Below, piece after piece: positions 4,961-62,730 of a stretch of 64,000 nucleotides of DNA. Source of the stretch: Macrostomum hystrix (Eukaryota; Animalia; Platyhelminthes); NCBI GenBank assembly GCA_950097015.1, contig CATNEN010000029.1, forward strand, positions 186,001 through 250,000, written 5' to 3'. The position numbers were made by a program, and so were the translations under genes. Position 1 is the stretch's first letter. The number at the start of each line of letters is the position of its first letter. The notes below the pieces were generated by a model. That model searched no databases and was not told the origin of the DNA. It saw nothing but the letters and a program-made list of their open reading frames with translations.

Positions 4961-5961
4961 TTACGACGGTGCAAGCAATAGAGACAGCGAACGCTTAGTC
5001 ATGAGCTTCGGCGAGGGCGACGGCGATAGTGACGGCGACGGCGATAGTGACGGCGACGGCGATAGTGACGGCGACGGCGATAGTGACGGCGACGGCGACG
5101 CAGAAGTCACGGAGGGCGATTGAGACGTCGACGGTGATGCCATTGTCAATGAAGGCGAGGGCGAGGGCGTCGGCGACAGCAATAGCAGCTCGGCTTCGGC
5201 TCGACGCGCCAGCTCAGCAACATGCCAGTCTTGTTCCGCACCGTTGGGCACTTCGAGTGCCATGAAGCGCGCCACGCCACGCACGTAGTCGACGTTGGTA
5301 CCGGCCCTACCTGTTGCCATGGCAATCTGATGCGCCTGCCAATCTAGGCTAGCCTTGCCTAGATAACGCGGATTGTCCGGCTCGGCTATGTAGGTGTAAG
5401 CCGATACATCAACTGACGATGCTGGCGATGTCAGTGCAGGTCGGAACGCCACCCGGCGCAGGCGATAGCCGCCCAGGTGAGCCTCTCGCTGGCTCAGGTG
5501 CGCCAAAGCCGCACTGGCGCCGACGGAGCCGCGGACCTCGTAGAGCACTCCCCAGGTGCAGGCGGTCGGTTCCGGCAGCAGAGTTGCCACGCGGCCCGGC
5601 TGCGTGGAGACAGGTAAAAGAGAGTGAGAAAGAAATTAGAACTTAAAGCTTGGAATTTCTGATCGTGAGGTCAGAAGTTCGAATCTTATTCCAGGGTTAG
5701 CTTCAGTCCATGGACTGAACAGCTGTACACAGCTGTAGATCTGTCCCAGCAGTTAATCATTTGCTCAGCAATCTTACTCACCGCCTCCTCGCTGCCCCTG
5801 TGCCAGACGCTGCCCTGGTAGAAGCGCCTCTTGAAGCCGCGGACGCAGCCGACAATCCGGCGGCTGTAGGGGAAGCCCGGCCGCCAGATCAGCGAGCCGT
5901 AGCCGAAGATGCGCAGCGGTGGTCCGCCGGGTTCGAATCTCGGCTCCAATCCAGACGACAT
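4961..5961 (-). CDS. CHAC: ChaC-family glutathione-specific gamma-glutamylcyclotransferase with Ser/Pro-repeat tail
   Basis: Exons 5961-5782 and 5599-4961, phase-0 GT-AG intron. Motifs [16 protein letters not shown]-x-x-HRG, PGRVATL, WGVLYEV, LSQRE and G-x-N-x-DYV. The paralog (CHAC1 or CHAC2) is not assigned. Confidence 0.93.
5660..5740 (+). mobile_element. Truncated SINE family B fragment in the ChaC intron
   Basis: B-box-like GAAGTTCGAATC followed by CAGTCCATGGACTGAACAGCTGTAC, shared with the copies at 25505 and 39517. Confidence 0.6.
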
Positions 5962-15486: not shown

Positions 15487-16626
15487 ATGACAGATGCTGC
15501 AGCAGCAGCCGAGGCTGCACCCCTGCCTCTGATCTGCTTGTCCGTGTCGGTGCTGGTTAACTGCAGTCACCTGATCCTGGCCACCTCGCTGACCGAACTG
15601 CGCCGACTGTACAACTGGCCACTGCTGGCGCCGTTGACGATGCACCTGGTGGCCGGAGTCTGCCAGCTCGTTGCCAGCGCCGCGGAGCGCTCCTGGGCAG
15701 CCGCTGACGCCGCCGGCGGTGGCAGCCTGGGGCTTGCCGCGGCAAACGCGTGCGCTCACCTGTGCCACCTGCTCACCGCCTCCTGGACCCTCTGCGCCGC
15801 CGTCGTCCTCTGGCGTCGGCACAGAATCTGCCATAGTCAGCAGCAGTTCCATGGTGGCGTCGGCGGCGAGGTGGAGACAGCGGCCGCCAACTCCGACTGG
15901 TCCGTGAGGCTTCGCTGTCTGGCCCTCAGCGCGCTGTTCAGCTCGCCTTTCCTGACAGCCGGCCTGTTCGGCAGGTCCGTGGGCCTTGACACGGCCCGCT
16001 ACAATGCCAGCCTGGCGCTGATCTTTCGACGGCAAAGAAACTGCAGCGACCCGGTCCAGTTGGCGACAGCTTCTGACGAGCTTCAACGAGCCGCGGTGTC
16101 GCATGCCTGGCTGCTATTCCTGCCCGCACTGCTGGCCTACAGCCTTCAGCTACCGCCGCTGCTGCTGGCGTCAGCGGCCTCGGCTGGAGCCAAAGGCGTC
16201 ATCGTCAACGGCGTCAGCTTGGAGATGGCGCCTGAGCTGCAGATGGCGGCGCAGACCTTGGCGCACACCCGGCGGGCGCTGGTGAAGTTCGCCGCCACCA
16301 GCCTGGCGGTGCAGGCCAGCGGGCTGCTGTCTATGGCCAGATTCAGCGGCTGCGACGGCGCCTGCCTCTGGTACGCGCACTACATTCTGCAGTCTCTGCA
16401 GGCGATCTTCATGGCAGTCAGCTGCCTGCTGGCGCGCGGCCCAGTTGAAGCCCTGGCCGATGCGTGCGGCAGCGGCGTCGGCGGCGGCATTCTGGGCGTC
16501 GGCGGCGTCAGGGAGGACACAAAGCTGGAGTCGGGACTGGGCCGGCTGGCGGCGGCGATGAATTCGCGGAAGGCGCCGCCTGCACCGATAAGACGGGGAT
16601 GCGCGTACAGGAGGGCGGCCAGCTAG
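15487..16626 (+). CDS. Divergent 7TM receptor, family B (adhesion/Methuselah-like) transmembrane domain
   Basis: 379-aa GC-rich ORF with seven hydrophobic segments. TM3 CAHLCHLLTASWTL resembles the family-B H-Y-x-x-L-A-S-x-x-W motif and TM7 YILQSLQAIFM resembles LNSLQG. A possible phase-2 acceptor at 15478-15479 means this could be a terminal exon. Confidence 0.65.
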   Translation: MTDAAAAAEAAPLPLICLSVSVLVNCSHLILATSLTELRRLYNWPLLAPLTMHLVAGVCQLVASAAERSWAAADAAGGGSLGLAAANACAHLCHLLTASWTLCAAVVLWRRHRICHSQQQFHGGVGGEVETAAANSDWSVRLRCLALSALFSSPFLTAGLFGRSVGLDTARYNASLALIFRRQRNCSDPVQLATASDELQRAAVSHAWLLFLPALLAYSLQLPPLLLASAASAGAKGVIVNGVSLEMAPELQMAAQTLAHTRRALVKFAATSLAVQASGLLSMARFSGCDGACLWYAHYILQSLQAIFMAVSCLLARGPVEALADACGSGVGGGILGVGGVREDTKLESGLGRLAAAMNSRKAPPAPIRRGCAYRRAAS

Positions 16627-17750: not shown

Positions 17751-20025
17751 CCACTAGAAGAAGATGGACGGGACATTTAGTTTCTTGGAAAATTTATTAA
17801 TGGCAGATTTTCACGGAAAACGCGAGATAGGAACTTTTCACTTTTTTACATTGGAATATTAACATTTTAATGTGCAAAAACGTGAAAAGTTACTTTCTCG
17901 CGAGTGAATTTTTCCTTGAAAATCTGGCTTTAATAAATTTTCCCAAGAAACGAAGTGCGATCCCGTCCTTCTTCTTCGAGTTGTCCTGTGTGAGTGCGTG
18001 TGCCTTCGCATTGTCACGAAATTCTGTTCTTTATCTATTAAATCTCTCCAACAGACAGAACTGATTTGCTGCAGAAATGGGAAGAAAAATAGTCTAGAAT
18101 TGACGGCCTAAATTTATCCCATGTGGATAATATCCCAAATAGTCGTCAGGCACAGCCTAGGCGATACTGTCCAAAAAGGGGGTCGTGCCAGTAAAGAATG
18201 TCTCCTTTGTCTCCTTTGTGACAAAGGCGAGAATTCGTGTATTTACATATTTTACATACCGGCGACTTTACTGGCTTCCGAGGCAGAGCTTAAGCAACAT
18301 TTTTCTCTCCGAACACACAAATAAAATTTTCAACACATAAGATCTTCATTTTGGACATTTATGAATTCATTTTTTCGACTAGTATCTCTTGTAAGCTTTA
18401 TAAGCGATTAATCAACGAAAGATGCGAGCAGGTAAGGTTTTCAAAGTGCAGCAGATAGGCGCAGAGTCTATGGCAGAAAGAATAATTGAATTAGCCTATT
18501 TTATCAATTAATTAATCTAAGCCAGCTAAAGCTGAAACACTGTCACTATCTGGTTCGCATTGCCCTGTCTATAAAGTAGGCCTCACCAAAACCTTGAGGA
18601 GACTGTCTGGAGACATCGCTACATTCGTTTCCTCCAAATTTAAGACTCCAGAACAACAATGTTTCAAATGTCTTAACAAAATCCGTATTTATTATTATTT
18701 GTTAGATCTAAAAAACTACCTACTATAAGTAGGAAAGCAGGCAAATACAAGTCTTGAAACGTGGTAAAACCTTAATTTTAAAAACTGTTTTTATAAATCA
18801 CTGTGTGCTTAAGACAAGAAATATGTGGTTTTTAAATACCCACATTTATCTTTCTCCCGTGTCTCCTAATATCTTCAACCAATCGCCATGAAAATACAGT
18901 ACTTCTAGAACATCGGCCTCGTCGTGGTTTCTGGTGGCAAAAACCACCAATAGAGGCATAATTTTCTTGCTCATAAATTTTCATCATGTAACCATGTCGG
19001 CGATCATTTTTAAAATATTGTATTGTTAATTACTATATTATTGAATGAATATGGATTCGCCATAGGGGTGTTTATGCAGTGCAATGTTAGCTGTCCATGT
19101 CACCAGGGTCTTCGACAAGAATCGCTGATTATCTCGACGATGCTGAAGTCGGACAGCTATGAAAGTTTGTTCATTGTAAAGGGTGGAAAGCTTTTATCCG
19201 AAACGGTGGACTGTCACGAAAATCGGTCATTCGGTTTGGGAGCTATTGTAAAGTGAAATACTTGAATATTTGAAATACTTCTGCATGTGGTATTTCGACT
19301 GTTAACTATTGCTTGTGGTGTCTGTAATCAGCGACCCCAACCCCCTTCAAAATTCTAGTGAACTCTGATCGAGCAATCCGATTGCGCATTGCCAATATGA
19401 CGGCAACTGATAAGCGGTTACATTTTAGGCAACGATTGCACTTTGAACTTTGAACCGAAAGGCGTCACGTATAGTATAGTTTCATTATCACAAAAAGTCT
19501 TCAAGTCTTGGTTTTCTATTTACAATTCAAAACAATAATTATCCTAGATCTCTGATTGGCTAAATCTTCTAACCCTGTCTAAAACGCCTCCCCTTCAGGA
19601 TCTCAGATTTGCTGTAATTAATCAAGGATTGGACTGCTAATCCTACGTCCAAAACTCATACTTCTCGAAGATCTCTGATTGGCTAAGACTTATTGACTGC
19701 CAACCCTGTCTAAAACGCCTTCCCTTTCAGGAATTCTGATTGTCCGTAATTAATAAAGCTATTGGACTTGTTAAATTTGTCAAAATCCTCTGATTGGTAG
19801 AAAATCTACGTGCCATTTTCCAGAGCTTTAACTTGGAACATCACTGATTGAAAAAAAACAAAGTACTCAATTTACCATACGAGTATTCAGTCACAAAACC
19901 AAAAACCCAACCAGTAGGCCGTCTAGCTGAGACTGAGATATATTATGAAGTTTTGAATGCAAAAAATCGTTACTTTAGCAGGAACAAAATGATAAGACCA
20001 AATTTAAGATTCCAAAGTGGCAGTC

Positions 20026-20943
20026 TCAGAGTTCATCCGCGTCATGCAACAGCATCGACTGCTGCCGTTGCCACAGTCGCCGGCAGTCATCGCCGCTGAG
20101 CCGGACCGCGCAAGAAAATCCGTGACTCACGAGCTCCTGGCGGAGCCCGCTGCCGCCGCTGGAGCTGTTTGAAGAGCGCGAGAGCTCCAGGCGACCGCGA
20201 TAGCGCCAAGCACCGGCCGCCGTGCCGCAATAGCTCAACATGAGCCGCTCGCCCCTGTCCTGCTCAGTAAGCCAGCTCAGCCGCCAGGCCTCCGTCACAG
20301 CCTGGCCAACCTTCGTCAGGCTGAGCAGCAGGGTGCCGTTCTCCGGCCAGACCGCCGCCACCTGCCGTCGCAATTTCACTGGCGAGCCTTCGAATATGAA
20401 GCCGCCAACGGCGAAGCCGGCGTCACCGTCTAGTAGCTCGCCGCGGCACGGATGACAGTCGTGAAACGGATGTCCGCCACGGACTGCGAACCAGAGCCCG
20501 CTGACTTCGGACAGCGCAGCGGGCGGGCCCCAGGTCTGCAGCTGGTCCGGGCGACAGTCGTCCTCAGAGCCGCCGTCATCCTCGGCACTGGCTGACGCTG
20601 GCGCCCTCAGCTGGACGCAGTTGTGCTCGGTGACTGCGCAGTTGAGAAACTCGGTGAGCAGTCGCACAGCCTTGCACCGGTACAAGCAGGCGGCGGAGCA
20701 GGTGTCACCGGAGTCCACGCAGGAGTGCAGGCAGGTGAGGCAGGCCCGACAGTCGGCGTTGACGGCGCATGAGTAGGACTGGCCAGGACAGCTGTAGGCG
20801 ATGCACCAGGCGTCCAAGGAGTGACCGGCGGCGGCGGTGGCAGAGCGCAGCGCATCCAAGGCAGCAGCGGAGGCGAGCTGCGGCTGTGCGCCCAGATGGA
20901 CCAGGAGTGCCACTAGTAGCAGATTAATTACCTGACGATGCAT
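20026..20943 (-). CDS. Secreted violaxanthin de-epoxidase-like (VDE/VDL) protein: Cys-rich domain plus lipocalin domain
   Basis: Intronless 305 aa with an N-terminal signal peptide. Cys spacing C-x4-C-x6-C-x5-C-x5-C-x3-C...C-x3-C...EFLNCAVTEHNCV matches the plant VDE N-domain (EFNECAVSRKKCV). GLWFAVRGGHPFHDCHPC aligns to GKWYITSGLNPTFDAFDC, and SYCG...YRGRLELSRSS to YYRG...YGGAVVYTRSS. Alignment is to Arabidopsis VDE as I recall it. Confidence 0.8.
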   Translation of the reverse strand: MHRQVINLLLVALLVHLGAQPQLASAAALDALRSATAAAGHSLDAWCIAYSCPGQSYSCAVNADCRACLTCLHSCVDSGDTCSAACLYRCKAVRLLTEFLNCAVTEHNCVQLRAPASASAEDDGGSEDDCRPDQLQTWGPPAALSEVSGLWFAVRGGHPFHDCHPCRGELLDGDAGFAVGGFIFEGSPVKLRRQVAAVWPENGTLLLSLTKVGQAVTEAWRLSWLTEQDRGERLMLSYCGTAAGAWRYRGRLELSRSSNSSSGGSGLRQELVSHGFSCAVRLSGDDCRRLWQRQQSMLLHDADEL

Positions 20944-21344
20944 GTTTCTTCTTTGAGGCCAATTAAGTCACATTGCATGTGGACATAATTATATGCAGAA
21001 TTGAGACTGCGGTCTAAAGTGTCTCATTGGCTTGTCAGTTCTATCTAAATGTGCTCATTATCTAATACTTTAGCTATTAAACAAATGGACGGAAGCTCCT
21101 ATCCCACCTGACATTCGACTGTATGTGTGAGCCGCAGAAAGTGTACCAAAAATGCAGCTCTCACTTTCTGCTCAAGTTCTTCTAGATTGAGGTAAAACGA
21201 GATAGCCCGCCAGAGTCACCTGAAGGTGCGGGACACAGCGGACTTTGCTCCGTAACTGCACACTTTTTGCAGCGCCTGTAACGTTAAGCACCGCCATTAT
21301 ACGAGTGAAGCCAAAGTAATAGCAGAGAATCGTACCTTTAGTCA

Positions 21345-24325
21345 AAGGATAGCAGACAATGACAGCTCAAATCAAGGAATAATGGTTGGAAATGACAGCT
21401 CAAATCAAGGAATAATGGTTGGAAATAACAGCTTAAATCAAGGAAATGACGGCTCAAATCAAAGAATGGCAGGAAATGGTGTCTAAGATCAAAGAATGAC
21501 AGAAAATCGCGGTTAAAATCAAAGAATGGCAGGAAATGGCGTCTAAGATCAAGGAATGGCAGGAAATGGCGTCTAAGATCAAAGAATGACAGAAAATCAC
21601 GGTTAAAATCAAAGAATGACATGAAATGCCGTTTAAGATCAAAGAATGACAGGAAATGCCGTCTAAGATCAAGGAATGACAGGAAATGCCGGTTAAAATC
21701 AAAGAATGACAGGAAATGACGGTTAAAATCAAAGAATGACAGGAAATGCCGGTTAAAATCAAAGAATGACAGGAAATGACGGTTAAAATCAAAGAATGAC
21801 AGGAAATTCCGTCTAAGATCAAGGAATGGCAGGAAATGATGGTTAAAATCAAAGAATGACAGGAAATGACGGTTAAAATCAAAGAATGACAGGAAATGCC
21901 GTCTAAGATCAAAGAATGACAGGAAATGCCGTCTAAGATCAAATAATGACAGGAAATGGCGTCTAAGATCAAATAATGACAGGAAATGCCGTCTAAGATC
22001 AAATAATGACAGGAAATGCCGTCTAAGATCAAGGAATGACAGGAAATGCCGTCTAAGATCAAGGAATGACAGGAAATGCCGTCTAAGATCAAGGAATGAC
22101 AGGAAATGCCGTCTAAGATCAAGGAATGACAGGAAATGCCGTCTAAGATCAAGGAATGACAGGAAATGCCGTCTAAGATCAAGGAATGACAGGAAATGCC
22201 GTCTAAGATCAAGGAATGACGGGAAATGACGACTGAACTCAAAGAATGACAGGAAATGCCGTCTAAGATCAAAGAATGACAGGAAATGCCGTCTAAGATC
22301 AAGGAATGACAGGAAATGCCGTCTAAGATCAAGGAATGACAGGAAATGCCGTCTAAGATCAAGGAATGACAGGAAATGCCGGTTAAAATCAAAGAATGAC
22401 AGGAAATGACGACTGAACTCAAAGAATGACAGGAAATGCCGTCTAAGATCAAGGAATGACAGGAAATGCCGTCTAAGATCAAAGAATGACAGGAAATGCC
22501 GTCTAAGATCAAGGAATGACAGGAAATGCCGTCTAAGATCAAGGAATGACAGGAAATGCCGTCTAAGATCAAGGAATGACAGGAAATGCCGGTTAAAATC
22601 AAAGAATGACAGGAAATGACGACTGAACTCAAAGAATGACAGGAAATGCCGTCTAAGATCAAAGAATGACAGGAAATGCCGTCTAAGATCAAGGAATGAC
22701 AGGAAATGACGACTGAACTCAAAGAATGACAGGAAATGCCGTCTAAGATCAAGGAATGACAGGAAATGCCGTCTAAGATCAAAGAATGACAGGAAATGCC
22801 GTCTAAGATCAAGGAATGACAGGAAATGCCGTCTAAGATCAAGGAATGACAGGAAATGCCGTCTAAGATCAAGGAATGACGGGAAATGACGACTGAACTC
22901 AAAGAATGACAGGAAATGCCGTCTAAGATCAAAGAATGACAGGAAATGCCGTCTAAGATCAAGGAATGACAGGAAATGCCGACTAAGATCAAAGAATGAC
23001 AGGAAATGCCGTCTAAGATCAAGGAATGACAGGAAATGCCGTCTAAGATCAAGGAATGACAGGAAATGCCGTCTAAGATCAAATAATGACAGGAAATGCC
23101 GTCTAAGATCAAGGAATGACAGGAAATGCCGTCTAAGATCAAGGAATGACAGGAAATGCCGTCTAAGATCAAATAATGACAGGAAATGCCGTCTAAGATC
23201 AAGGAATGACAGGAAATGCCGTCTAAGATCAAGGAATGACAGGAAATGCCGTCTAAGATCAAGGAATGACAGGAAATGCCGTCTAAGATCAAGGAATGAC
23301 AGGAAATGCCGGTTAAAATCAAAGAATGACAGGAAATGACGACTGAACTCAAAGAATGACAGGAAATGCCGTCTAAGATCAAAGAATGACAGCAAATGAT
23401 GGTTAAAATCAAAGAATGACAGGAAATGCGTCTAAGATCAAATAATGACAGGAAATGCCGTCTAAGATCAAATAATGACAGGAAATGCCGTCTAAGATCA
23501 AATAATGACAGGAAATGCCGTCTAAGATCAAATAATGACAGGAAATGCCGTCTAAGTTCAAAGAATGACAGGAAATGCCGTCTAAGATCAAGGAATGACA
23601 GGAAATGCCGTCTAAGATCAAGGAATGACAGGAAATGCCGTCTAAGATCAAGGAATGACAGGAAATGCCGGTTAAAATCAAAGAATGACAGGAAATGACG
23701 ACTGAACTCAAAGAATGACAGGAAATGCCGTCTAAGATCAAAGAATGACAGGAAATGCCGTCTAAGATCAAGGAATGACAGGAAATGCCGTCTAAGATCA
23801 AGGAATGACAGGAAATGCCGTCTAAGATCAAGGAATGACAGGAAATGCCGTCTAAGATCAAGGAATGACAGGAAATGCCGTCTAAGATCAAGGAATGACA
23901 GGAAATGCCGGTTAAAATCAAAGAATGACAGGAAATGCCGTCTAAGATCAAAGAATGACAGGAAATGATGGTTAAAATCAAAGAATGACAGGAAATGCCG
24001 TCTAAGATCAAAGAATGACAGCAAATGATGGTTAAAATCAAAGAATGACAGGAAATGCCGTCTAAGATCAAAGAATGACAGCAAATGATGGTTAAAATCA
24101 AAGAATGACAGCAAATGACGGTTAAAATCAAAGAATGACAGGAAATGCCGTCTAAGATCAAGGAATGACAGGAAATGATGGTTAAAATCAAAGAATGACA
24201 GGAAATGACGGTTAAAATCAAAGAATGACAGGAAATGCCGTCTAAGATCAAGGAATGACAGGAAATGATGGTTAAAATCAAAGAATGACAGGAAATGACG
24301 ACTGAACTCAAAGAATGACAGCGAA
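21345..24325. repeat. 30-bp minisatellite (AGGAAATGCCGTCTAAGATCAAGGAATGAC)n
   Basis: About 100 units with three main central variants (CCGTCTAAGA, CCGGTTAAAA, ACGACTGAAC). A 1-nt deletion near 23429 shifts the register. Confidence 0.98.
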
Positions 24326-25883: not shown

Positions 25884-28800
25884 TCAGGAAGTGGCGCCGG
25901 ACAATTCAACAGTCGGCTGAATGTCGCTCAGTTCAACAGTGTTGGCATCCGCGCCGGCATCGCCAGCGTCGCCGATTTCAGCAGCAACCGCAGCCGCATT
26001 GTCGTGCGATGCGCCGCCGCTATCAGCGAAAATAACTGAGACAGCTTCATCGGCAAAGGACTCCTGTTGCTGCTGTGGCTGCTGCTGCGGCGGCGGTTGC
26101 AGCGAAAATGGTGGCGGATTTTCGCAAATAAACTCGGAAACTGAAGAGGCGGCCGACAATCTCTCCATATAAGGCAGTAGATCGCGCAGCTCAGTGTCCA
26201 ACTGATCTCCAACCCAGGTGCGCACTCGAATCTGCATTGGTTAGGAGCCGAAATCGGGTCACTGTTCACCTACTTTTACAGTCTGCTGATGGCATGCTAT
26301 TCTAGGCATATTTGGAGACGTATTCATAACCATCAATTTCAAGCTAAACTCACAGCGTTCTCCGTGTTAAACATGTAGGAAGCCGGTGAGTTGTCAATAA
26401 TAACACACCGATCTACAGGCCGGCCCAGCTGGGCCAGGTCTTTTACAAAATTGTCACCGTGAAAGACGCACGATTCGCGGAATAGGCGATATTTGAAGGC
26501 CGACCACCGGTCTAGACGGTCAGATACCGGATCAGCGTACTGTGGGATGGTTAGGGATTATAACTGAGGATCTGGGAGGGTTCCGTGTGAGAATCTGAGG
26601 ATTTGAGAGTGTCAGATCACAAAGATACCAACTAGTATCACTGGGTAGAAGCAGTGGTCAGAGCAGTTCTTACCTTGGCCAGGCTAGCGGTGAACAGCAC
26701 GCATTCAAATAGCTGGCCCATTCGCTCCAGGAACTCATCAGTGAAAGGACGCTTGAGCACATAGACCTGGTGCACCAAGCCTTCGATTTCAACGTCAATG
26801 ATGAAATCTGGATCGTCAACGTACTGAAGTGATGCAGATGCGAATTGTGTTAATAAAGAGCGAAGCGTAACTATGAAGTTCCATTATAAAACGGCCAATG
26901 CTAAACGCAAGCTGAAGGTCCCGAAGCTTGGATTGATCCGCTAAAGTTATTTGGGGTGTAGCGGCGGACTTGGGGACTTGTGCAATTTAAGCCTTTTTTA
27001 ACTATTTTACGCCCGAGTACACTGTCACTAAATAAAGTACCAATGCCCCACAGCCCGGGGGCGAGTGGGTCAGCGGCTAACGTCGCTGCCTCGCACTCCA
27101 AAGGACGCTAGTTCGATTCACCCTTCAAGTCACGATTAATTTCGGGACTTGTTGGGGGGGTTTGGACAGTAGCGACCGGCGGAGGTGCACCATATTTCGT
27201 GCAATCAAAGCTTGAAATAATAGCTTCGCTCCTGCCTTCTGTGTGCCTGCTTGTTTGTGTTTGTGTTTGTGCGTTGGGCCGGGTGTGAGGCGTTGTATGG
27301 GGGGTGGGGCGGGTGTGCACCAGCCATGCGTGCTCTGAGCGGCGAGGTTTCACCAGCCGTCTGCGCGCGTGGCTTGGTCCTCTCGTCCCTACCCTTAAGG
27401 CATATAAGTCCTCCCCTGGTTTGGTCAGCTCTGTGCGTGTGCGGGCCTGGGGGTGAGAGGCACTCCGGCTGCCGCCCCCTTCCCCGCTTGGCTTGCGGCT
27501 GTGTATGAGGTGCCTGTGTTCAGGGGTCTAGATGGCGCGATGGGCGACTCCCGCCTAGTTCGCCGGCCTGGGGGCATGCCGTTCCTGCGCTTGTGCGTCA
27601 AGTGCCCCAGGCCCCCCTGCAATTAAGTAAAGTAAGTAAGCCCCACAGCCCTGCACTTAGATCGTATTGTTATTATTTTGGGCACACTAATCCACCTATA
27701 CTAAATTAAGCCCTAAACTCGGACCTTAAATGAGCTGTGCACTAGAGTCTCATCCAGATCGATCACTGCACAAATGCGGTCTCCCAAGTTAGGATCTCGC
27801 GGACCCAGTAGATCAATGGAGAAAGTCTGGCCGCCATTGTGATGATAACGATGGTGCTGCAGGTGTTGCTGCTGCTGCTGCTGCCGCTGATTGCGCCTAG
27901 CAGAGGTGCGCCGGTCCGGGCAGAAACAGCAGAACAGTTCACGAAGTAAGCGGGGTTTGGATCTTTCGCGTGCGGGTGTCACAGCTGTTACTGTTGCTGG
28001 TGCTGTTGCTGGCGCAGCTGTTTGTGGCTTTGTTGAGTCCTCCTGGGCATTTGAACTGCCTTCCTCACTGAGTGCCACCGTGGAATCTCCTATGAATTTA
28101 TATTTTAGTACTACTTTGTCGTTTAGGAAAATAAAAAAGTCATTTATCTAGCAATAAATGTCAACAATGGTGTTAATTACAATGTAAATTCTATTTCTTG
28201 AAGGAAAGAAAAGTTTTTTACAATTAAATAATATTTGTATCAAGACTAAATTTTTAGGATTAAAAGGGTTCTACTACCAATAACATAGTAATTTCACTGA
28301 TATCACCAAAGCTATTGTATGCTGGATTCTTTTATATTACACATCACTTTTTATGCAATTATTAAGAAATATGTATATGTTAACATTTTTGTTTTAAGCT
28401 TTTAGATTTTTTAAGTAACATTGTAGCAATAAAATCTGGCTGAATAGTTTATTCAGGCTTTACAGATTATATATTTGAGAGCCAGTATATATTTCACGTC
28501 TCAGGTCGTGGAATATAGCTGCGACCTGCCAGCGGGCCTAGCAGTGACATGCAGAACATTACAGTACAGCCAGCCCATCCCACCAAGGTAGGGTTAGAGT
28601 GCCGCGCCCACAAGCTGCGGCAGCCAACGGCAGCAAGAACAGAACCCCCAGGGGCCAATGGCGTTAGTCAAGGCTGCGCAGCAGGGACGACCACTCTGGA
28701 AAGTGGACCTGAGGGTTTTAGTGGTTCAAGGAGGCGAGCTGGAGGCCGAGGAAACAGAAGTGGCGCTGGCAGCTTACAAGGAGAGAGAGCAGGCCTACAT

Positions 28801-39959: not shown

Positions 39960-40870
39960 AACTTCAAGCTGCAACCTGTATGGCCGATTCCGAATCCGCT
40001 CGGGTTAGCGCCTCACCGAGCTGCCCGGCGGCTCAGTAGCCGCTGCCGTTTCCACCGACGCAGAGTCCGGAGCATCTGAAATCCCGCTAGCCGCATTCGA
40101 TACCACTGGCGCCCGGTCTGTTCCAGGCTCGACCTCAGGTTGCACTGACGCGATCGATGGTGCGGCTGCACGAGCTGAGCACCGCGGACTGGAGTCGATG
40201 GTGGCAGACGGTATGGTCGGCTCAGACAGCATCTGGTCGATGGGGCGGCGTACATAGTTGCGCTGGGCCGCATAAACCACGGTACCGGACGCCCAGCCGG
40301 CGTCCTCGCCGAAGCCCTTGACTCGAACGCTGTCGCCGACCTCGAACCCGTTCCACCAATGACGGCCGCAGGAGGTCCAACCTGGAGCGCAGCCGGCGCC
40401 CAAATAGAAGCTCGCTGGGAGACACGCCGGTTGTTGGATGAAGTTTTGCAGCGCCGCAGCAGAGTGACCGGACTTTCTGATGTGCAGCTTCAGCGTCTGG
40501 ACGAACCGCTCGGCTTGGCCGTTGGTTGCCGGATGGTATGGCGCCGATGTTATGTGTCGAATACCGTTGCGGCTGGCGAATTCAGAGAACTCCTTTGACG
40601 AGAACTGTGGACCGTTATCGGAGACTAGTATGCGAGGTAGGCCCAGGTGGCTGAAGACGTCTCGCAGATGAGCGATGGTGCTGCCGGCCGAGGTGTCAGT
40701 CATCTGTCGAACCTCTGGCCACTTGCTGTGCGCGTCGATGATAATCAGATAGACTCGACCGTCGACAGGGCCGGCGAAATCGACGTGAACCTTGATGCGT
40801 TGGAGTGCGTTGGAGCCTTGATCGGATCAGCCTGATGAGCTTTGCAGGTTTCGCATGTTCGCGCCAGCTG
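39960..40870 (-). mobile_element. Ty3/gypsy-type integrase (rve) fragment, degenerate
   Basis: HVDFAGPVDGRVYLIIIDAHSKWPEV...LVSDNGPQFSS...SAPYHPATNGQAERFVQTLK with DDE residues. Frameshifts downstream and no LTRs found. Confidence 0.88.
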
Positions 40871-47096: not shown

Positions 47097-48392
47097 TCAC
47101 AGAGAGACGCTGACTTCTTCCAGCCCGCCAGCAGCCGTCACGGAGTTGCTCTCACCACCAGGCTGGCAGAGTGCCTCAGCCTGACGATTCTGCTGCACCG
47201 TCCGCAGCCGCAACAGTTGCTGATGCTGCAGCTGCTGCGATGGCGTAGCAAGTGGATGACGTCTCCGCCCGCGGCAGCCGAGCAGTCGCATGAAGGCACG
47301 GCGGAAATCGCGCATGGAGTGCGCGTAGATGGCCGGGTTCACAGCGCTGTTGCAGTAGCCCAGCCACGTCACCACGGCCAGCAGCAGCTTCTCGTACTGG
47401 CCGAGGCCGCCTGGCCCGCTCAGGGCCGACAGCGAGCTGCAGACAAAGAACGGCAGCCAGCAGGCGATGAAGACGCCCATCACAATGCCCAGTGTTTTTG
47501 CGGCGCGGCGCTCACGCGAAAAGCGGGCGAATTGCTTACGGCGCGAGGCCAGCAAGCCGCTGCGCCCGTCGTTGAACTGATTCTGCTCCTGGCCGTCAGC
47601 GACACCTTCCTGCTCATCAGCGGGCGACAAGCCGCCGCCTCCGCCGCCTCGGTGAATGCGCAGCACCACGGTGGCCTGGGTGCCATGACCGCGCAGGACT
47701 TTCGCGCCTTCACGCCAGCTGCGAACTAGCCGGGCCGCGGTGCGGTAGATCTTGCAGTACACGAACACCATCACTAGCAGGGGCGCGTAGAAGGACACCA
47801 GCGAGGAGCAGATCAGGTAGGCCGGATCGCTGGTGAAGCTGCAGACGCTGGGCAAGCGGCTAGTCGGACTGGTCGAACGCCACCAGGCGATGGCGGGAAA
47901 GCTGATGAGGCTGGAACAGAGCCAAACAGCGGCAATCATCAATAGGCAACGTCGCTTTGTGACCCTGGACGGATAGCGCATGGGGTTCTGCACTGCCCAG
48001 TAGCGCTCCAGCGCAATCATGCACAGGTTCAGAATGCTGGCCGTGGAGCTTAGGACGTCGAACGCGTGCCAGAGGTCGCACCAGACGGGGCCAAACAGCC
48101 AGCGCTCGCGAGTTGCCTGGGCGATGGCGGCGAACGGCATGACAACGGCGCCCATCAGCAGGTCGGCGGTGGCCAGCGACACGATCAGGTAGTTTGTCAC
48201 GGTGCGTAGGCAGGGCTCCCGCAGGACGGCCAGGATCACCAGGCAGTTGCCAAGCACCGTGACGCAGGCCAGCAGGCTTAGTAAACAACCAATCAGAGCG
48301 TCCTGCGGCTGCACTTCCGGGGACAGGGCGCTGTAGTTCATTTCAATCATTCCCATCAAAATTGAACGTAAAAACAATGCTATTTCTCGCAC
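47097..48392 (-). CDS. Invertebrate D1-like dopamine receptor (Dop1R2/INDR type), intronless class A GPCR
   Basis: 431 aa with TNYLIVSLATADL, WCDLWHAFDVLSSTASILNLC (TM3 Asp), ERYWA, SFPAIAWWR, SSLVSFY (TM5 Ser), LRIHRGG in ICL3, RERRAAKTLGIVMGVF, CWLPFF and NPAIY. Confidence 0.88.
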   Translation of the reverse strand: MREIALFLRSILMGMIEMNYSALSPEVQPQDALIGCLLSLLACVTVLGNCLVILAVLREPCLRTVTNYLIVSLATADLLMGAVVMPFAAIAQATRERWLFGPVWCDLWHAFDVLSSTASILNLCMIALERYWAVQNPMRYPSRVTKRRCLLMIAAVWLCSSLISFPAIAWWRSTSPTSRLPSVCSFTSDPAYLICSSLVSFYAPLLVMVFVYCKIYRTAARLVRSWREGAKVLRGHGTQATVVLRIHRGGGGGGLSPADEQEGVADGQEQNQFNDGRSGLLASRRKQFARFSRERRAAKTLGIVMGVFIACWLPFFVCSSLSALSGPGGLGQYEKLLLAVVTWLGYCNSAVNPAIYAHSMRDFRRAFMRLLGCRGRRRHPLATPSQQLQHQQLLRLRTVQQNRQAEALCQPGGESNSVTAAGGLEEVSVSL

Positions 48393-56385: not shown

Positions 56386-58309
56386 ACCACCTAAGAACTG
56401 GCTTTCAACTTGATTTTCTTATTATTCGTAATACGAGTATGATGCTGGATAAATCAGTTGCATTTTTCCACCAATTTATAACAATGTGCACGACACTCAA
56501 AACTTACAAAAAACTAATTATTTACCAATGTCAACCCCAATTCATATGCGTGTGTCATCGTTTCACATGATGTTGGACGCAATATGCAATGACCAGAGGC
56601 ATAATGGATGGTGACTGTCCTGTCAGAAGAGGTGCACTCTCTCAAAAAGTGTCTGCATTGCCCAAGGCGGTTGCTATGCAAGCAGATCCATTCAGCGGAG
56701 CATTGTCTCTTAATTGAGCTTCAATCAGGCTGCCATAATTCAGTTTCTGGCTCTATTTGAGCACTAGGCCTCTTCCTTTATCTTCTCTCATCTAAAGATG
56801 AGAGATGCATCGCTTTTATGACTTGCTTTGACTAATAGCGAATCGAGACTCGTCAAAGGGCTTTACCTTGCGGGCCTTGCGTCTCCTTTGTCGACTACTT
56901 TAGTGCGGCGATGAATTGGCTCCGTGACTGGGCATTGAATTTCCCCTCAGCTGCCAAGCGGTTCGGCGTCGCGCAGTTCCGCCATGACGAGTGAGCTCAG
57001 GCTGCCCCAAATTTTAATAACCGCTTTTTGGTTTAATTTACGAGTTACTCCCGCAAACACGCTTTATTGCGTGTTCTTCAAAGTCAGTGTTCCAGACCAG
57101 GCCCACGCTTCCTTGTCTTTATAGAATTGTATTGCACAAGATATTAACTATCACATCGTCCAACTATGTTTAATTGAAAATGCTGTATTATACGAGCATT
57201 AATAGCCACTGCCTACTTCACGATAGCTCCCAAACCGAATGACCGAATGACCAATAATTAACAATATAATCAACAAAATTTGCCGACACGATTACACTAA
57301 GAAATATTGTAAGCTGAAAATTTATGGATTTTTGCCTGTGTTCTGGATTTTAATGGCGATTGGTTGAATGTTTTGGGAGATACAGAAAAAAGAAAGATGT
57401 GGGTGTTGGAAATACCACGATCGTGGTCTTTCTACAGTTAATAATTTTTTGGGTGAGTTCGATGCGCTTTTACAAACTGGTGGACTATGTAGGGTGGCAT
57501 TCACTGCAAGTTAAAAAAACTCACTGCAGCATCACTTTGATCGAACTCTACAGGAAAGTTTCTGGTCTAGCATTTGTATGGATTGGATGGATTTGCTCTG
57601 AATGTATAGCATCAATGTTCAACCGGATTTAGTCGTCAAATTTTCCTGTAAATCATTTTCCGTAATTGTCTAGCGTTGCCTAAACTGGTCGCTCCTCTAA
57701 ACTGAGTGGCTATATGTTCTATAAGCTCCGGTGCACTCAACGTACACTTTAGAGTGAAGGTGAAGCTTCAGATTCTTCACTAAAAGCAAAATCCTGAGGT
57801 GGGGCTAATCGATCCATTAGAACGTTGAGCATGTGACGCTGAAAAAGATGCTACCTGACCGAGCTATTCCCATTTCAGGCAAAAAATGTCACCCATTTGT
57901 AAAGCCTGCTTCATGCTCTGCCTAACTCTGTTAATCTCTCTTCTGTGGGATTTTTAGTCGAAATGCCTTGCTTGAGCTCAGTATTAATTCTCATTTTGAA
58001 ATTAGAACTTTCGTTGGCTCAGGGAAGGTCCACTCCTCACTCCGCACTTCTCTTAGAGGAACCAAACGACAGATCGTGGAAATAAAGTTGAGCCTAATCA
58101 GCAGCTTACGAGGGTAGGAATCGTAATAAAAATATCAACTGTTCGTCGCGACACATGACGTGGATAAAACTATTCATGGCAGGGAGGTCCAAAGAACTGT
58201 GCCAAATCCAACTAAACCTTGACTTGCCGTAGAACTTAGATAAGCTACTAGTTGAATTCGCATATATTACGAGTACTGTAGTCTATGGGTAAGTTGTCTA
58301 AGAGGTAAT

Positions 58310-61300
58310 GGATACTAAGGGTGAACTGGAGGTAATGGATTCTGGATGTGAACTGAACTGGAGGTAATGGATACTGGATGTGAACTGAATTGGAGGTAAT
58401 GGATTCTGGATGTGAATGAACTGGAGGTAATGGATTCTGGAGGTGAACTGAATTGGTGGCAATGGATTCTGGAGGTGAACTGAATTGGTGGCAATGGATT
58501 CTGGAGGTGAACTGAATTGGTGGCAATGGATTCTGGAGGTGAACTGAACTGGAGTTAATGGATTCTGGATGTAAACTGAACTGGAGGTAATGGATTCTGG
58601 AGGTGAACTGAACTGGAGGTATTGGATTCTGGAGGTGAACTGAATTGGAGGTAATGGATTCTGGAGGTGAACTGAACTGGAGGTAATAGATTCTGGATGT
58701 GAACTGAACTGGTGGTAATGGATTCTGGATGTGAACTGAACTGGAGGTAATGGATTCTGGAGGTGAACTGAACTGGAGGTAATGGATTCTGGATGTGAAC
58801 TGAATTGGTGGCAATGGATTCTGGAGGTGAACTGAATTGGTGGCAATGGATTCTGGGTGTGAACTGAATTGGAGGTAATGGATTCTGGATGTGAACTGAA
58901 TTGGAGGTAATGGATTCTGGAGGTGAACTGAACTGGAGGTAATGGATTCTGGAGGTGAACTGAACTGGTGGTAATGGATTCTGGATGTGAACAGAATTGG
59001 TGGCAATCGATACTGGAGGTGAACTGAATTGCTGGCAATGGATTCTGGAGGTGAACTGAATTGGTGGTAATGGATTCTGGAGGTGAACTGAATTGGTGGC
59101 AATGGATAATGGAGGTGAACTGAATTGGTGGCAATGGATACTGGAGGTGAACTGAATTTGTGGCAATGGATTCTGGGTGTGAACTGAATTGGAGGTAATG
59201 GATTCTGGATGTGAACTGAATTGGTGGCAATGGATTCTGGGTGTGAACTTAATTGGTGGCAATGGATACTGGAGGTGAACTGAATTGGTGGCAATGGATT
59301 CTGGAGGTGAACTGAATTGCTGGCAATGGATTCTGGAGGTGAACTGAATTGGTGACAATGGATTCTGGATGTGAACTGAATTGGTGGTAATGGATTCTGG
59401 AGGTGGAAGAACTGGAGTTAATGGATTCTGGATGTGAACTGAATTGGTAGCAATGGATACTTGAGGTGAACTGAATTGGTGGCAATGGATTCTGGAGGTG
59501 AACTGAATTGGTGGCAATGGATAATGGGTGTGAACTGAATTGGTGGCAATGGATTCTGGATGTGAACTGAACTGGAGTTAATGGATACTGGATGTGAACT
59601 GAATTGGTGACAATGGATTCTGGAGGTGAACTGAATTGGTAGCAATGGATTCTGGAGGTGAACTGAATTGGTGACAATGGATTCTGGAGGTGAACTGAAT
59701 TGGTGACAATGGATACTGGAGGTGAACTGAATTGGTGGCAATGGATTCTGGAGGTGAACTGAATTGGTGGCAATGGATACTGGGTGTGAACTGAATTGGT
59801 GGCAATGGATTCTGGATGTGAACTGAACTGGAGTTAATGGATTCTGGGTGTGAACTGAATTGGTGGCAATGGATACTGGATGTGAACTGAATTGGTGGTA
59901 ATGGATTCTGGAGGTGAACTGAATTGGTGGCAATGGATTCTGGATGTGAACTGAATTGGTGACAATGGATACTGGAGGTGAACTGAATTGCTGGCAATGG
60001 ATTCTGGAGGTGAACTGAATTGGTAGCAATGGATTCTGGAGGTGAACTGAATTGGTGACAATGGATTCTGGAGGTGAACTGAATTGGTGACAATGGATAC
60101 TGGAGGTGAACTGAATTGGTGGCAATGGATTCTGGAGGTGAACTGAATTGGTGGCAATGGATTCTGGAGGTGAACTGAATTGGTGACAATGGATTCTGGA
60201 GGTGAACTGAATTGGTGACAATGGATACTGGAGGTGAACTGAATTGGTGGCAATGGATTCTGGAGGTGAACTGAATTGGTGGCAATGGATTCTGGATGTG
60301 AACTGAACTGGAGTTAATGGATTCTGGATGTGAACTGAATTGGTGACAATGGATTCTGGAGGTGAACTGAATTGGTAGCAATGGATTCTGGAGGTGAACT
60401 GAATTGGTGACAATGGATACTGGAGGTGAACTGAATTGGTGGTAATGGATTCTGGAGGTGAACTGAATTGGTGACAATGGATACTGGAGGTGAACTGAAT
60501 TGGTGGTAATGGATTCTGGAGGTGAACTGAACTGGATTTAATGGATTCTGGAGGTGAACTGAATTGGTGACAATGGATTCTGGAGGTGAACTGAATTGGT
60601 GGCAATGGATACTGGAGGTGAACTGAATTGGTGACAATGGATACCGGAGGTGAACTGAATTGGTGGTAATGGATTCTGGAGGTGAACTGAATTGGTGGTA
60701 ATGGATTCTGGAGGTGAACTGAATTGGTGACAATGGATACTGGAGGTGAACTGAATTGGTGGCAATGGATACTGGAGGTGAACTGAATTGGTGACAATGG
60801 ATACTGGAGGTGAACTGAATTGCTGGCAATGGATTCTGGAGGTGAACAGAATTGGTGGCAATGGATTCTGGAGGTGAACTGAATTGCTGGCACTGGATTC
60901 TGGGTGTGAACTGAATTGGAGTTAATGGATTCTGGATGTGAACTGAATTGGTGGTAATGGATTCTGGAGGTGAACTGAACTGGAGGTAATGGATTCTGGA
61001 GGTGAACTGAACTGGTGGTAATGGATTCTGGATGTGAACAGAATTGGTGGCAATCGATACTGGAGGTGAACTGAATTGGTGGCAATGGATTCTGGAGGTG
61101 AACTGAATTGGTGGCAATGGATTCTGGAGGTGAACTGAACTGGAGTTAATGGATTCTGGAGGTGAACTGAACTGGAGGTAATGGATTCTGGAGGTGAACT
61201 GAACTGGAGGTAATGGATTCTGGAGGTGAACTGAACTGGTGGTAATGGATTCTGGATGTGAACAGAATTGGTGGCAATCGATACTGGAGGTGAACTGAAT

Positions 61301-62730
61301 TGGTGGCAATGGATTCTGGAGGTGAACTGAATTGGTGGCAATGGATTCTGGAGGTGAACTGAACTGGAGTTAATGGATTCTGGAGGTGAACTGAACTGGA
61401 GGTATTGGATTCTGGAGGTGAACTGAATTGGAGGTAATGGATTCTGGAGGTGAACTGAACTGGAGGTAATGGATTCTGGAGGTGAACTGAACTGGTGGTA
61501 ATGCATTCTGGATGTGAACAGAATTGGTGGCAATCGATACTGGAGGTGAACTGAATTGGTGGCAATGGATACTGGAGGTGAACTGAATTGGTGGCAATGG
61601 ATACTGGAGGTGAACTGAATTGGTGGCAATGGATACTGGAGGTGAATTGATTTTGTGGCAATGGATTCTGGGTGTGAACTGAATTGGAGGTAATGGATTC
61701 TGGATGTGAACTGAATTGGTGGCAATGGATTCTAGGTGTGAACTGAATTGGAGGTAATGGATTCTGGATGTGAACTGAATTGGTGGCAATGGATTCTGGA
61801 TGTGAACTGAATTGGTGGCAATGGATTCTGGGTGTGAACTGAATTGGAGGTAATGGATTCTGGATGTGAACTTAATTGGTGGCAATGGATACTGGAGGTG
61901 AACTGAATTGGAGGTAATGGATTCTGGAGGTGAACTGAATTAGTGGCAATGGATTCTGGAGGTGAACTGAATTAGTGACAATGGATTCTGAATGTGAACT
62001 GAATTGGTGGTAATGGATTCTGGAGGTGAACTGAACTGGAGTTAATGGATTCTGGATGTGAACTGAATTGGTGGCAATGGATACTGGAGGTGAACTTAAT
62101 TGGTGGCAATGGATTCTGGATGTGAACTGAATTGGTGGTAATGGATTCTGGAGGTGAACTGAACTGGTGGTAATGGATTCTGGATGTGAACAGAATTGGT
62201 GGCAATGGATTCTGGAGGTGAACTGAATTGGTGGCAATGGATACTGGAGGTGAACTGAATTGGTGGCAATGGATTCTGGAGGTGAACTGAACTGGAGGTA
62301 ATGGATTCTGGAGGTGAACTGAATTGCTGGCAATGGATTCTGGAGGTGAACTGAATTGGTGGCAATGGATACTGGAGGTGAACTGAATTGGTGGCAATGG
62401 ATTCTGGAGGTGAACTGAATTGGTGGCAATGGATACTGGAGGTGAACTGAATTGGTGGTAATGGATTCTGGAGGTGAACTGAATTGGTGGCAATGGATTC
62501 TGGAGGTGAACTGAATTGGTGGTAATGGATTCTGGAGGTGAACTGAATTGGTGGCAATGGATTCTGGAGGTGAACTGAATTGGTGGTAATGGATTCTGGA
62601 GGTGAACTGAATTGGTGGCAATGGATACTGGAGGTGAACTGAATTGGTGGCAATGGATACTGGAGGTGAACTGAATTGGTGACAATGGATTCTGGATATG
62701 AACTTAATTGGTTTTAATGGATACTAGAGG
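58310..62730. repeat. 32-bp minisatellite (GGATTCTGGAGGTGAACTGAATTGGTGGCAAT)n
   Basis: About 138 units with period 32. ORF translations rotate frames, as expected for a non-triplet period. Confidence 0.98.

Follow-up and report, generated by a model that had tools for sequence, protein, structure and literature searches.

A short-form violaxanthin de-epoxidase superfamily gene in the flatworm Macrostomum hystrix and its predicted role in dietary xanthophyll conversion

A gene for a protein of the violaxanthin de-epoxidase (VDE) superfamily was found in a 64,000-nucleotide stretch of the genome of the flatworm Macrostomum hystrix (GenBank assembly GCA_950097015.1, contig CATNEN010000029.1, positions 186,001 to 250,000 of the forward strand), herein referred to as the window. 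The superfamily comprises VDE itself, the VDE-like proteins (VDL), and the VDE-related proteins (VDR), and a 2026 review treats it as a property of photosynthetic eukaryotes (PMC13181403). The flatworm gene is a short, heterotroph-type variant tagged for the endoplasmic reticulum (ER); its orthologue in Macrostomum lignano is already present in databases, unstudied. We propose that this constrained flatworm gene encodes an enzyme that would act in the ER lumen on dietary epoxy-xanthophylls, and the statement as a whole is given about an even chance.

Members of this family have been seen in heterotrophs before. In 2008, one expressed sequence tag (EST) from oyster was described as the sole VDE sequence of a non-photosynthetic eukaryote, with algal contamination suspected (Coesel et al., PMC2483416). 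In 2014, a VDE-like copy was described in the heterotrophic stramenopile MAST-4, for which a role as a plain lipocalin was suggested (PMC3998028). The family is also listed in passing in the genome paper of the Manila clam (PMC5499747), and animal proteins have been annotated automatically in databases. A first-pass annotation of the same DNA had left open whether animal homologues were described. They had thus been observed, but searches of the literature on VDE in Macrostomum, bivalves, or invertebrates, and on halocynthiaxanthin, found no functional or evolutionary study of the animal copies.

Gene structure, domain architecture, and family membership

The gene is an uninterrupted open reading frame (ORF) of 305 amino acids with an ATG start, located on the minus strand in the list of ORFs of the window. 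The intronless ORF described in the first-pass annotation was therefore borne out for this copy; the M. lignano orthologue, however, has one intron. The features of the gene are as follows, with values of the predicted local distance difference test (pLDDT) from a structural model and with ratios of nonsynonymous to synonymous substitution rates (dN/dS).

20026–20943, minus strand: coding sequence, 305 codons and a stop (20026–20028), without intron; Pfam VDE match above the cut-off
19880–21037, minus strand: transcript-like unit with a leader of about 94 nt, the coding sequence, and a trailer of about 146 nt; matched exactly by contigs from public runs
20863–20943, minus strand: predicted signal peptide, about residues 1–27, with an A-S-A site before the mature end; hydrophobicity only, with helix 2–19 in the model
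20608–20808, minus strand: VDE-type Cys-rich N-domain, residues 46–112; ten family Cys, pLDDT 82–95, dN/dS 0.15
20506–20607, minus strand: acidic, poorly ordered linker, residues 113–146, holding C130; pLDDT 59–69, dN/dS 0.38
20179–20505, minus strand: lipocalin barrel, residues 147–255; profile match to 3cqn, eight model strands, Foldseek matches, dN/dS 0.18
20458–20460, 20290–20292, 20284–20286, and 20230–20232, minus strand: cavity residues D162, E218, W220, and Y238, respectively
20047–20178, minus strand: C-terminal helices and variable tail, residues 256–299, with C278 and C287; dN/dS 0.45, indels
20029–20046, minus strand: C-terminal HDADEL, an ER-retrieval-type motif, identical in the window protein and two M. 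lignano proteins

Membership of the VDE/VDL/VDR superfamily, in a short form, is practically certain. The protein matches the Pfam family PF07137 (VDE) with an E-value of 6e-14 and 52.5 bits, the curated cut-off being 25.7. Thus, the absence of any family match, which the first-pass annotation had named as a ground for rejecting the assignment, was not observed. The match spans only residues 46–168, corresponding to profile positions 3–115 of 242; all 62 aligned relatives also match this family. A single-sequence search of the PDB with the flatworm protein gave nothing relevant. A profile of eleven family members, on the other hand, matched 3cqn, the crystal structure of the Arabidopsis VDE lipocalin, over the whole barrel (E 8e-21).

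An AlphaFold model built on the 62 relatives has a mean pLDDT of 80 and a predicted template modeling (TM) score of 0.74, and shows eight strands after a helical Cys-rich domain. In a structural search of Swiss-Prot with this model, the top matches were four plant VDEs (E 9e-14 to 2e-11, query residues 4–305), which were ahead of generic lipocalins by about eight orders of magnitude. Foldseek placed the C-terminal half of the model among lipocalins, with 121 lipocalin matches at E ≤ 0.001, 3cqn included. Additionally, a VDE-domain cluster of the ESM Atlas superposes on the model with a TM score of 0.68 and a root-mean-square deviation of 3.5 Å over 243 residues.

All ten VDE cysteines are kept, at residues 47, 52, 59, 65, 71, 75, 82, 86, 102, and 109, and are invariant among the 62 relatives. 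The gaps between them are 5, 7, 6, 6, 4, 7, 4, 16, and 7 in the flatworm protein versus 5, 7, 6, 6, 4, 9, 4, 15, and 7 in Arabidopsis VDE. Two extra cysteines of this domain, C68 and C90, are specific to Macrostomum, and C278 and C287 of the C-terminal part are nearly invariant across the family. The Glu-rich acidic C-terminal domain, about 100 residues long in true VDE, is absent, the protein ending 18 residues after the last conserved Cys. The cysteine pattern, the two profile matches, and the structural comparisons all agree with the architecture proposed in the first-pass annotation, a VDE-type Cys-rich domain followed by a lipocalin and lacking the acidic domain.

The sequence is present in seven public runs belonging to two labelled organisms. 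Contigs of 1158 and 1154 nt from two of these runs correspond to window positions 19880–21037 with zero differences and zero joints, and the depth is zero across the flanks (19300–19879 and 21038–21330) in all four runs mapped. Contigs bounded by the gene in this way are the pattern of an unspliced transcript, and transcription is putative on this basis, the kind of library not being on record. No spliced-leader sequence was seen on the contigs covering the gene. The presumed 5' leader (20944–21037, minus strand) contains four upstream ATGs opening reading frames of 12, 7, 16, and 1 codons, one of which overlaps the main start out of frame. A TATA-like A/T-rich stretch is located about 20–30 nt upstream of the contig start.

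The host locus and its conservation in Macrostomum

The VDE-like gene is, with very high probability, a real gene of the flatworm host. Its only close relatives are three M. lignano proteins (72% identity). The gene order is conserved with the M. lignano locus (L001), where a NIF-domain gene, the VDE-like gene, and a 379-aa ORF stand in the same succession. The M. lignano orthologue (BOX15_Mlig011564g1) has a single GT-AG intron of 610 bp, in phase 0, located in the linker after QLQ. The G+C content at third codon positions (GC3) is 0.77 for the VDE-like gene and 0.775 for a rhodopsin-type G protein-coupled receptor (GPCR) 27 kb away, and the immediate flanks have 38–40% GC. Compared with the orthologue in M. 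lignano, the coding sequence as a whole has a dN/dS of 0.27, and the Cys-rich domain and the barrel have lower values of 0.15 and 0.18, respectively, at a synonymous divergence (dS) of about 0.8. These ratios indicate that the gene is under purifying selection.

These observations bear on the possibility that the segment is an assembly chimera or contaminant, in which DNA of an alga or protist has been joined to that of the flatworm, or else a pseudogene in decay. Repeats do flank the gene, and the oyster EST of this family was once suspected as algal contamination (PMC2483416). However, the three-gene order is found in the independent M. lignano assembly, the orthologue there is interrupted by a spliceosomal intron, and GC3 is equal to that of the neighboring GPCR gene. 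In addition, exact contigs were found in seven runs under two organism labels, and an intact ORF with a dN/dS of 0.27 speaks against decay. Shared synteny, the orthologue's intron, host-like GC3, dN/dS, and the exact contigs together make a contaminant, chimera, or pseudogene very unlikely indeed. The chimeric contaminant considered in the first-pass annotation can thus be set aside at this level of probability. Its description of the surroundings as metazoan genes and satellite DNA also held, with an animal-type GPCR and a satellite upstream of the gene. The features of the locus are as follows.

26113–26826, minus strand: upstream syntenic neighbor, exons of a NIF/CTD-phosphatase-like gene; 83–94% amino acid identity to exons of the Pfam NIF gene in L001, order and orientation are conserved beside the VDE-like gene of M. 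lignano
15487–16626, plus strand: downstream syntenic neighbor, 379-aa ORF; 71% nucleotide identity over 1079 bp to M. lignano L001 15287–16348
21441–24326, no strand: flanking 30-bp satellite, 96 copies at 90% identity (Tandem Repeats Finder), bounding the upstream region
47097–48392, minus strand: rhodopsin-family GPCR, 431 aa, a single uninterrupted ORF; 7tm_1, E 2e-75
40005–40703, minus strand: retroelement integrase fragment; rve, E 4e-11
4961–5590, minus strand: ChaC-like ORF, E 3e-23

The satellite starts 500 bp upstream of the VDE-like gene. A related 33-bp unit is located at 21358–21445, and minus-strand ORFs of 685 and 965 aa arise spuriously from the two. The 379-aa ORF matched no Pfam family; its GC3 is 0.81, and a 212-aa ORF overlaps it on the opposite strand. 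Another repeat array probably occupies the region 58000–62700, where GC skew is strong (0.5–0.6) and numerous TTG-initiated ORFs overlap on the minus strand. Two of the M. lignano proteins deviate from the window protein. The first, P0002, is without the acidic linker (about residues 113–138), which may reflect alternative splicing or a different gene model. The second, P0003, is family-like for about 141 residues, continues with unrelated sequence, and stops at 189 aa; it looks like a frameshifted extra copy in the polyploid M. lignano genome.

Relatives, the short-form group, and origin

An exhaustive profile search covered 1.84 billion representative sequences and gave 78 proteins at E ≤ 0.001. 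The best match outside Macrostomum has an E-value of 7e-14 and about 27% identity, and no algal sequence close to the flatworm gene was found among these representatives. Named relatives among the best matches include bivalves (Tegillarca, Magallana, Saccostrea, and Pinctada), an abalone (Haliotis), a chiton (Liolophura), two chytrids, and the vampyrellid amoeba Leptophrys. Amphioxus relatives were found in Branchiostoma lanceolatum, B. floridae, and a B. floridae × B. japonicum hybrid. The animal homologues sit on chromosome-scale assemblies (oysters, abalone, chiton, and amphioxus), the oyster, abalone, and amphioxus genes being located on contigs of 3 to 58 Mb. The two nearest clusters of the ESM Atlas are commonest in Mollusca and Porifera. 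Two of the nearest sequences, P0004 and P0025, lie on 1-kb metagenome or transcriptome contigs that offer no genomic context. Word-indexed protein searches with two family alignments gave few matches and no further named relatives.

Three groups were read from a table of key columns for 61 relatives. The labels VDL-like and VDR-like, used herein for two of these groups, were inferred from motifs and extensions and not from named reference sequences. Proteins of the VDL-like group are long, with N- and C-terminal extensions and the motifs DC-x-DC, ENW, and Y[TN]G. Proteins of the VDR-like group are also long and have EYW and Y[SA]G. The third group consists of short proteins of 240–330 aa with a signal peptide only, without the C-terminal domain, and with an extra Cys pair: C130, which lies in the linker, and C239, which adjoins the catalytic-type Tyr. 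Nearly every short protein has both cysteines, and the pair is absent from all of the long ones. The short-group signature, C130 and C239 included, is present in the flatworm protein. The motifs of true VDE, DDW and YRG, were found in none of the 61 relatives tabulated.

Animal proteins annotated as 'violaxanthin de-epoxidase, chloroplastic-like' or 'VDE lipocalin domain-containing' (Magallana, Haliotis, Branchiostoma, Tegillarca, Pinctada, and Liolophura) resemble the flatworm protein in length (260–300 aa), in having only a signal peptide, in the family cysteines, in the C130–C239 pair, and in the missing C-terminal domain. They differ from it in having only 21–28% identity to it. In addition, HDADEL and C68/C90 are restricted to Macrostomum, and oysters have Ser at the position of Asp177 of plant VDE.

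Overall, the short-form group is patchily distributed over algae-eating heterotrophs, namely molluscs, amphioxus, chytrids, and a vampyrellid, and probably includes sponges. One chytrid homologue (P0008, KAJ3084678.1), from Quaeritorhiza haematococci, is recorded as 'Vitamin D3 receptor', almost certainly through a mix-up of acronyms with VDR in the sense of VDE-related. The host of this chytrid is Haematococcus, a carotenoid-rich alga. Another protein of the family, P0035 (300 aa; L002:488-1390, also on L003), is encoded on contigs whose genes are packed as in prokaryotes. Overlapping genes downstream of it encode an enoyl-CoA hydratase, a FabK-like enoyl-ACP reductase (249 bits), and an acyl-CoA dehydrogenase, and the N-terminus of P0035 itself resembles a lipoprotein signal ending in Cys. 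The family is said to lack prokaryotic homologues, and P0035 may be a bacterial exception; the bacterial and archaeal species genomes of GTDB yielded no relative of it.

In the phylogenetic tree, both the VDL-like and the VDR-like clade are supported at 100/100, with the Macrostomum pair located outside them. Several results obtained here tell against our reading of the gene. In the non-VDL half of the tree, the pair joins a basal polytomy, its stem measuring 2.45 substitutions per site, and because of this very long branch any exact position is tentative. Monophyly of Macrostomum with molluscs and amphioxus is not recovered, although it is accepted by the approximately unbiased (AU) test (p 0.325), and the same test also accepts placement next to the VDL-like clade (p 0.115). 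In amphioxus, the introns come after residues 83, 125, and 174, and the genes of oyster and abalone have none; M. lignano and amphioxus have no intron position in common, and the intron pattern is compatible with transfer. Finally, no other flatworm homologue turned up in the searches for relatives.

The last of these results, together with the AU test beside the VDL-like clade, could be explained by horizontal acquisition of a VDL or VDR gene from an alga, for instance a food diatom. The same explanation would fit the diatom diet of the worm, the intronless state of the window gene, and a family otherwise described only from photosynthetic eukaryotes (PMC13181403). Such acquisition from the diet, one of two origins suggested in the first-pass annotation, is nevertheless unlikely. 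The best match outside Macrostomum among 1.84 billion representatives is as distant as E 7e-14 and about 27% identity, and the Macrostomum pair is excluded from both long, alga-like clades. The protein has the C130–C239 pair of the heterotroph short forms, which is absent from these clades, and is without a plastid-type N-extension and the C-terminal domain. The composition of the gene is fully host-like. Since the locus is syntenic between two species at a dS of about 0.8, any transfer must be old, preceding the split of the two Macrostomum species.

The other suggested origin, an uncharacterized metazoan branch, fits better, as the nearest named relatives include animals and the flatworm protein shares the extra pair C130 and C239 with them; monophyly with these animals is the part that was not recovered. 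Similarly, the first-pass annotation had considered animal orthologues that follow the species tree. The family is indeed present in many animals, and the grouping of the flatworm with them, while accepted by the AU test, does not appear in the tree. Old inheritance with many losses is the origin favored here, with roughly half of our confidence. Old transfer from an unsampled donor is possible but clearly less probable, and recent transfer from a food alga is improbable.

Cavity residues, ER residence, and proposed function

In VDE, Asp177 is the proton donor to the epoxide and is catalytic together with Tyr198, which holds ascorbate, whereas Trp179 binds the carotenoid and Asp114 gates the cavity (PMC13181403). 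Profile alignment and a residue table gave the flatworm equivalents as Glu218 for Asp177 (VTEAW), Tyr238 for Tyr198 (SYCG), Trp220 for Trp179, and Asp162 for Asp114. The first two equivalences had been read correctly in the first-pass annotation. Asp162 is invariant across all 62 relatives. Alignment of motifs to the 3cqn segment showed that the pH-switch residues D117 and H121 are replaced by Pro165 and Glu169. Thus, of the marks of a true VDE, the Tyr198 and Trp179 equivalents are present, and Asp177, the Glu-rich domain, and D117/H121 are not. In VDL and VDR, the 177 position is Glu, with Tyr198 and Trp179 kept (PMC13181403), and the flatworm protein has the VDL state in both Glu218 and Tyr238. 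Read against that review, the Glu218/Trp220/Tyr238 state and the absence of the C-terminal domain uphold the earlier view that the protein is closer to VDL/VDR than to true VDE.

Comparison with the known proteins gives the following picture. With VDE (Arabidopsis NPQ1; PDB 3cqn/3cqr), the flatworm protein shares the spacing of the ten-Cys N-domain, the lipocalin barrel, the Asp114, Trp179, and Tyr198 equivalents, and, by prediction, a lumenal place in an endomembrane compartment. It differs from VDE in Glu for Asp177, in Pro and Glu at D117 and H121, in lacking the Glu-rich domain, in a signal peptide and HDADEL instead of plastid and thylakoid targeting, and in the extra cysteines C130, C163, C239, and C278/C287. 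VDL1 and VDL2 of diatoms, haptophytes, and eustigmatophytes, which convert violaxanthin to neoxanthin and diadinoxanthin to allenoxanthin, open the epoxide without net reduction (PMC13181403). They have the same Glu, Tyr, and Trp and a reduced or absent C-terminal domain; a DC-x-x-C motif and the C-terminal Cys pair are further shared with the long clade labelled VDL-like by its motifs. In contrast to that clade, from which it is separated with 100/100 support, the flatworm protein has no long N-terminal presequence, has YCG instead of Y[TN]G, possesses C130, and belongs to a host without plastids. VDR, a protein of plants and algas of unknown function that is located in the chloroplast (PMC13181403), also has the Glu/Tyr/Trp cavity and no Glu-rich domain. 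The clade labelled VDR-like has EYW and Y[SA]G, is without C130, C163, and C239, and excludes the Macrostomum pair with 100/100 support.

The C-terminal HDADEL is identical in both Macrostomum species although the preceding tail diverges, and its last residues (ADEL) fit the pattern [KRHQSA][DENQ]EL at the C-terminus. An ER-retrieval-type C-terminus was absent from every other relative checked. The signal peptide recognized in the first-pass annotation was supported by hydrophobicity (Kyte-Doolittle 11-residue maximum of 3.13 at residue 5) and by model helix 2–19. The protein had been regarded as secreted, which is probably wrong: the conserved HDADEL points to a protein that enters the secretory pathway and is retained in the ER. 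ER residence is accordingly predicted from sequence as the probable, though by no means assured, location.

Cultures of M. lignano are fed the diatom Nitzschia curvilineata (PMC7053086), and bivalves and tunicates are known to open the epoxide and convert the allene to an acetylene in dietary fucoxanthin and peridinin (PMC6949322). Given this diet and these conversions, dietary epoxy-xanthophylls are the most economical guess for the substrate. In the proposed mechanism, the protein would be retained in the ER lumen and would act there on membrane-dissolved xanthophylls, as VDE does at the lumenal face of the thylakoid. Glu218 would donate a proton to the 5,6-epoxide of an algal carotenoid taken up with the food, such as violaxanthin, diadinoxanthin, or fucoxanthin(ol). 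The epoxide would then either be removed by reduction or be opened in a redox-neutral reaction of the VDL type. Since the Glu-rich domain is missing and D117 and H121 are replaced, a thylakoid-style, pH-gated xanthophyll cycle is not expected. An enzyme acting on epoxy-carotenoids is predicted tentatively, at slightly less than an even chance.

A serious rival, although a rather less probable one, is that the protein has kept the VDE scaffold and lost the chemistry. It would then be a non-catalytic lipocalin, serving as an ER or secretory carrier or chaperone of a hydrophobic ligand such as a carotenoid, retinoid, sterol, or lipid. Lipocalins mostly serve as carriers (PMC13181403), the MAST-4 protein was suggested to be a plain lipocalin (PMC3998028), and the carotenoid-binding crustacyanins and retinoid binders are also found among the structural matches of the flatworm model. 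Moreover, the Asp177 position varies in the short group (Ser, Thr, Glu, Asp, or Asn), being Ser in oysters and Thr in one chytrid, and this variation weakens the case for a common catalytic mechanism. On the other hand, Asp162, Trp220, and mostly Tyr238 are conserved deep in the hydrophobic cavity, and conservation of this kind is taken as a sign of catalysis in the review of VDE (PMC13181403). The Cys-rich domain, essential for VDE activity, is also the most constrained part of the protein (dN/dS 0.15).

For the enzymatic proposal, the variable Asp177 position is thus an adverse point, and others stand beside it. Plant VDE depends on acidic pH, and that of the ER is close to neutral. The signal peptide is called from hydrophobicity alone, the runs carrying the full contig have no recorded library kind, and activity, ligand, and localization are all predictions.

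The main consequence of these findings is that a family supposed to be restricted to plants and algae is now anchored in a flatworm chromosome, with conserved synteny, purifying selection, and probable transcription. Its named carriers nearly all eat or parasitize algae. Dietary fucoxanthin, peridinin, and diadinoxanthin are altered in marine animals through reactions of the epoxide and the allene, for which the VDE-like family is an obvious candidate; literature searches found neither an enzyme named for these animal steps nor a link between the conversions and a de-epoxidase-type enzyme. Algae-eating invertebrates and other heterotrophs may therefore carry VDE-like enzymes of their own for dietary xanthophyll conversions that are enzymatically orphan, the flatworm copy being ER-resident. 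The conversions meant are opening or removal of the epoxide and the change of allene to acetylene, as in fucoxanthinol to halocynthiaxanthin. This joint claim is speculative and, taken together, doubtful. Should the proposed function be wrong, the gene would still encode an unusual ER-resident lipocalin with a ten-cysteine domain. M. lignano offers RNA interference, transgenesis, transparency, and a pure diatom diet, which make the question directly testable. An old question of animal carotenoid metabolism thereby becomes accessible to experiment in a tractable model.

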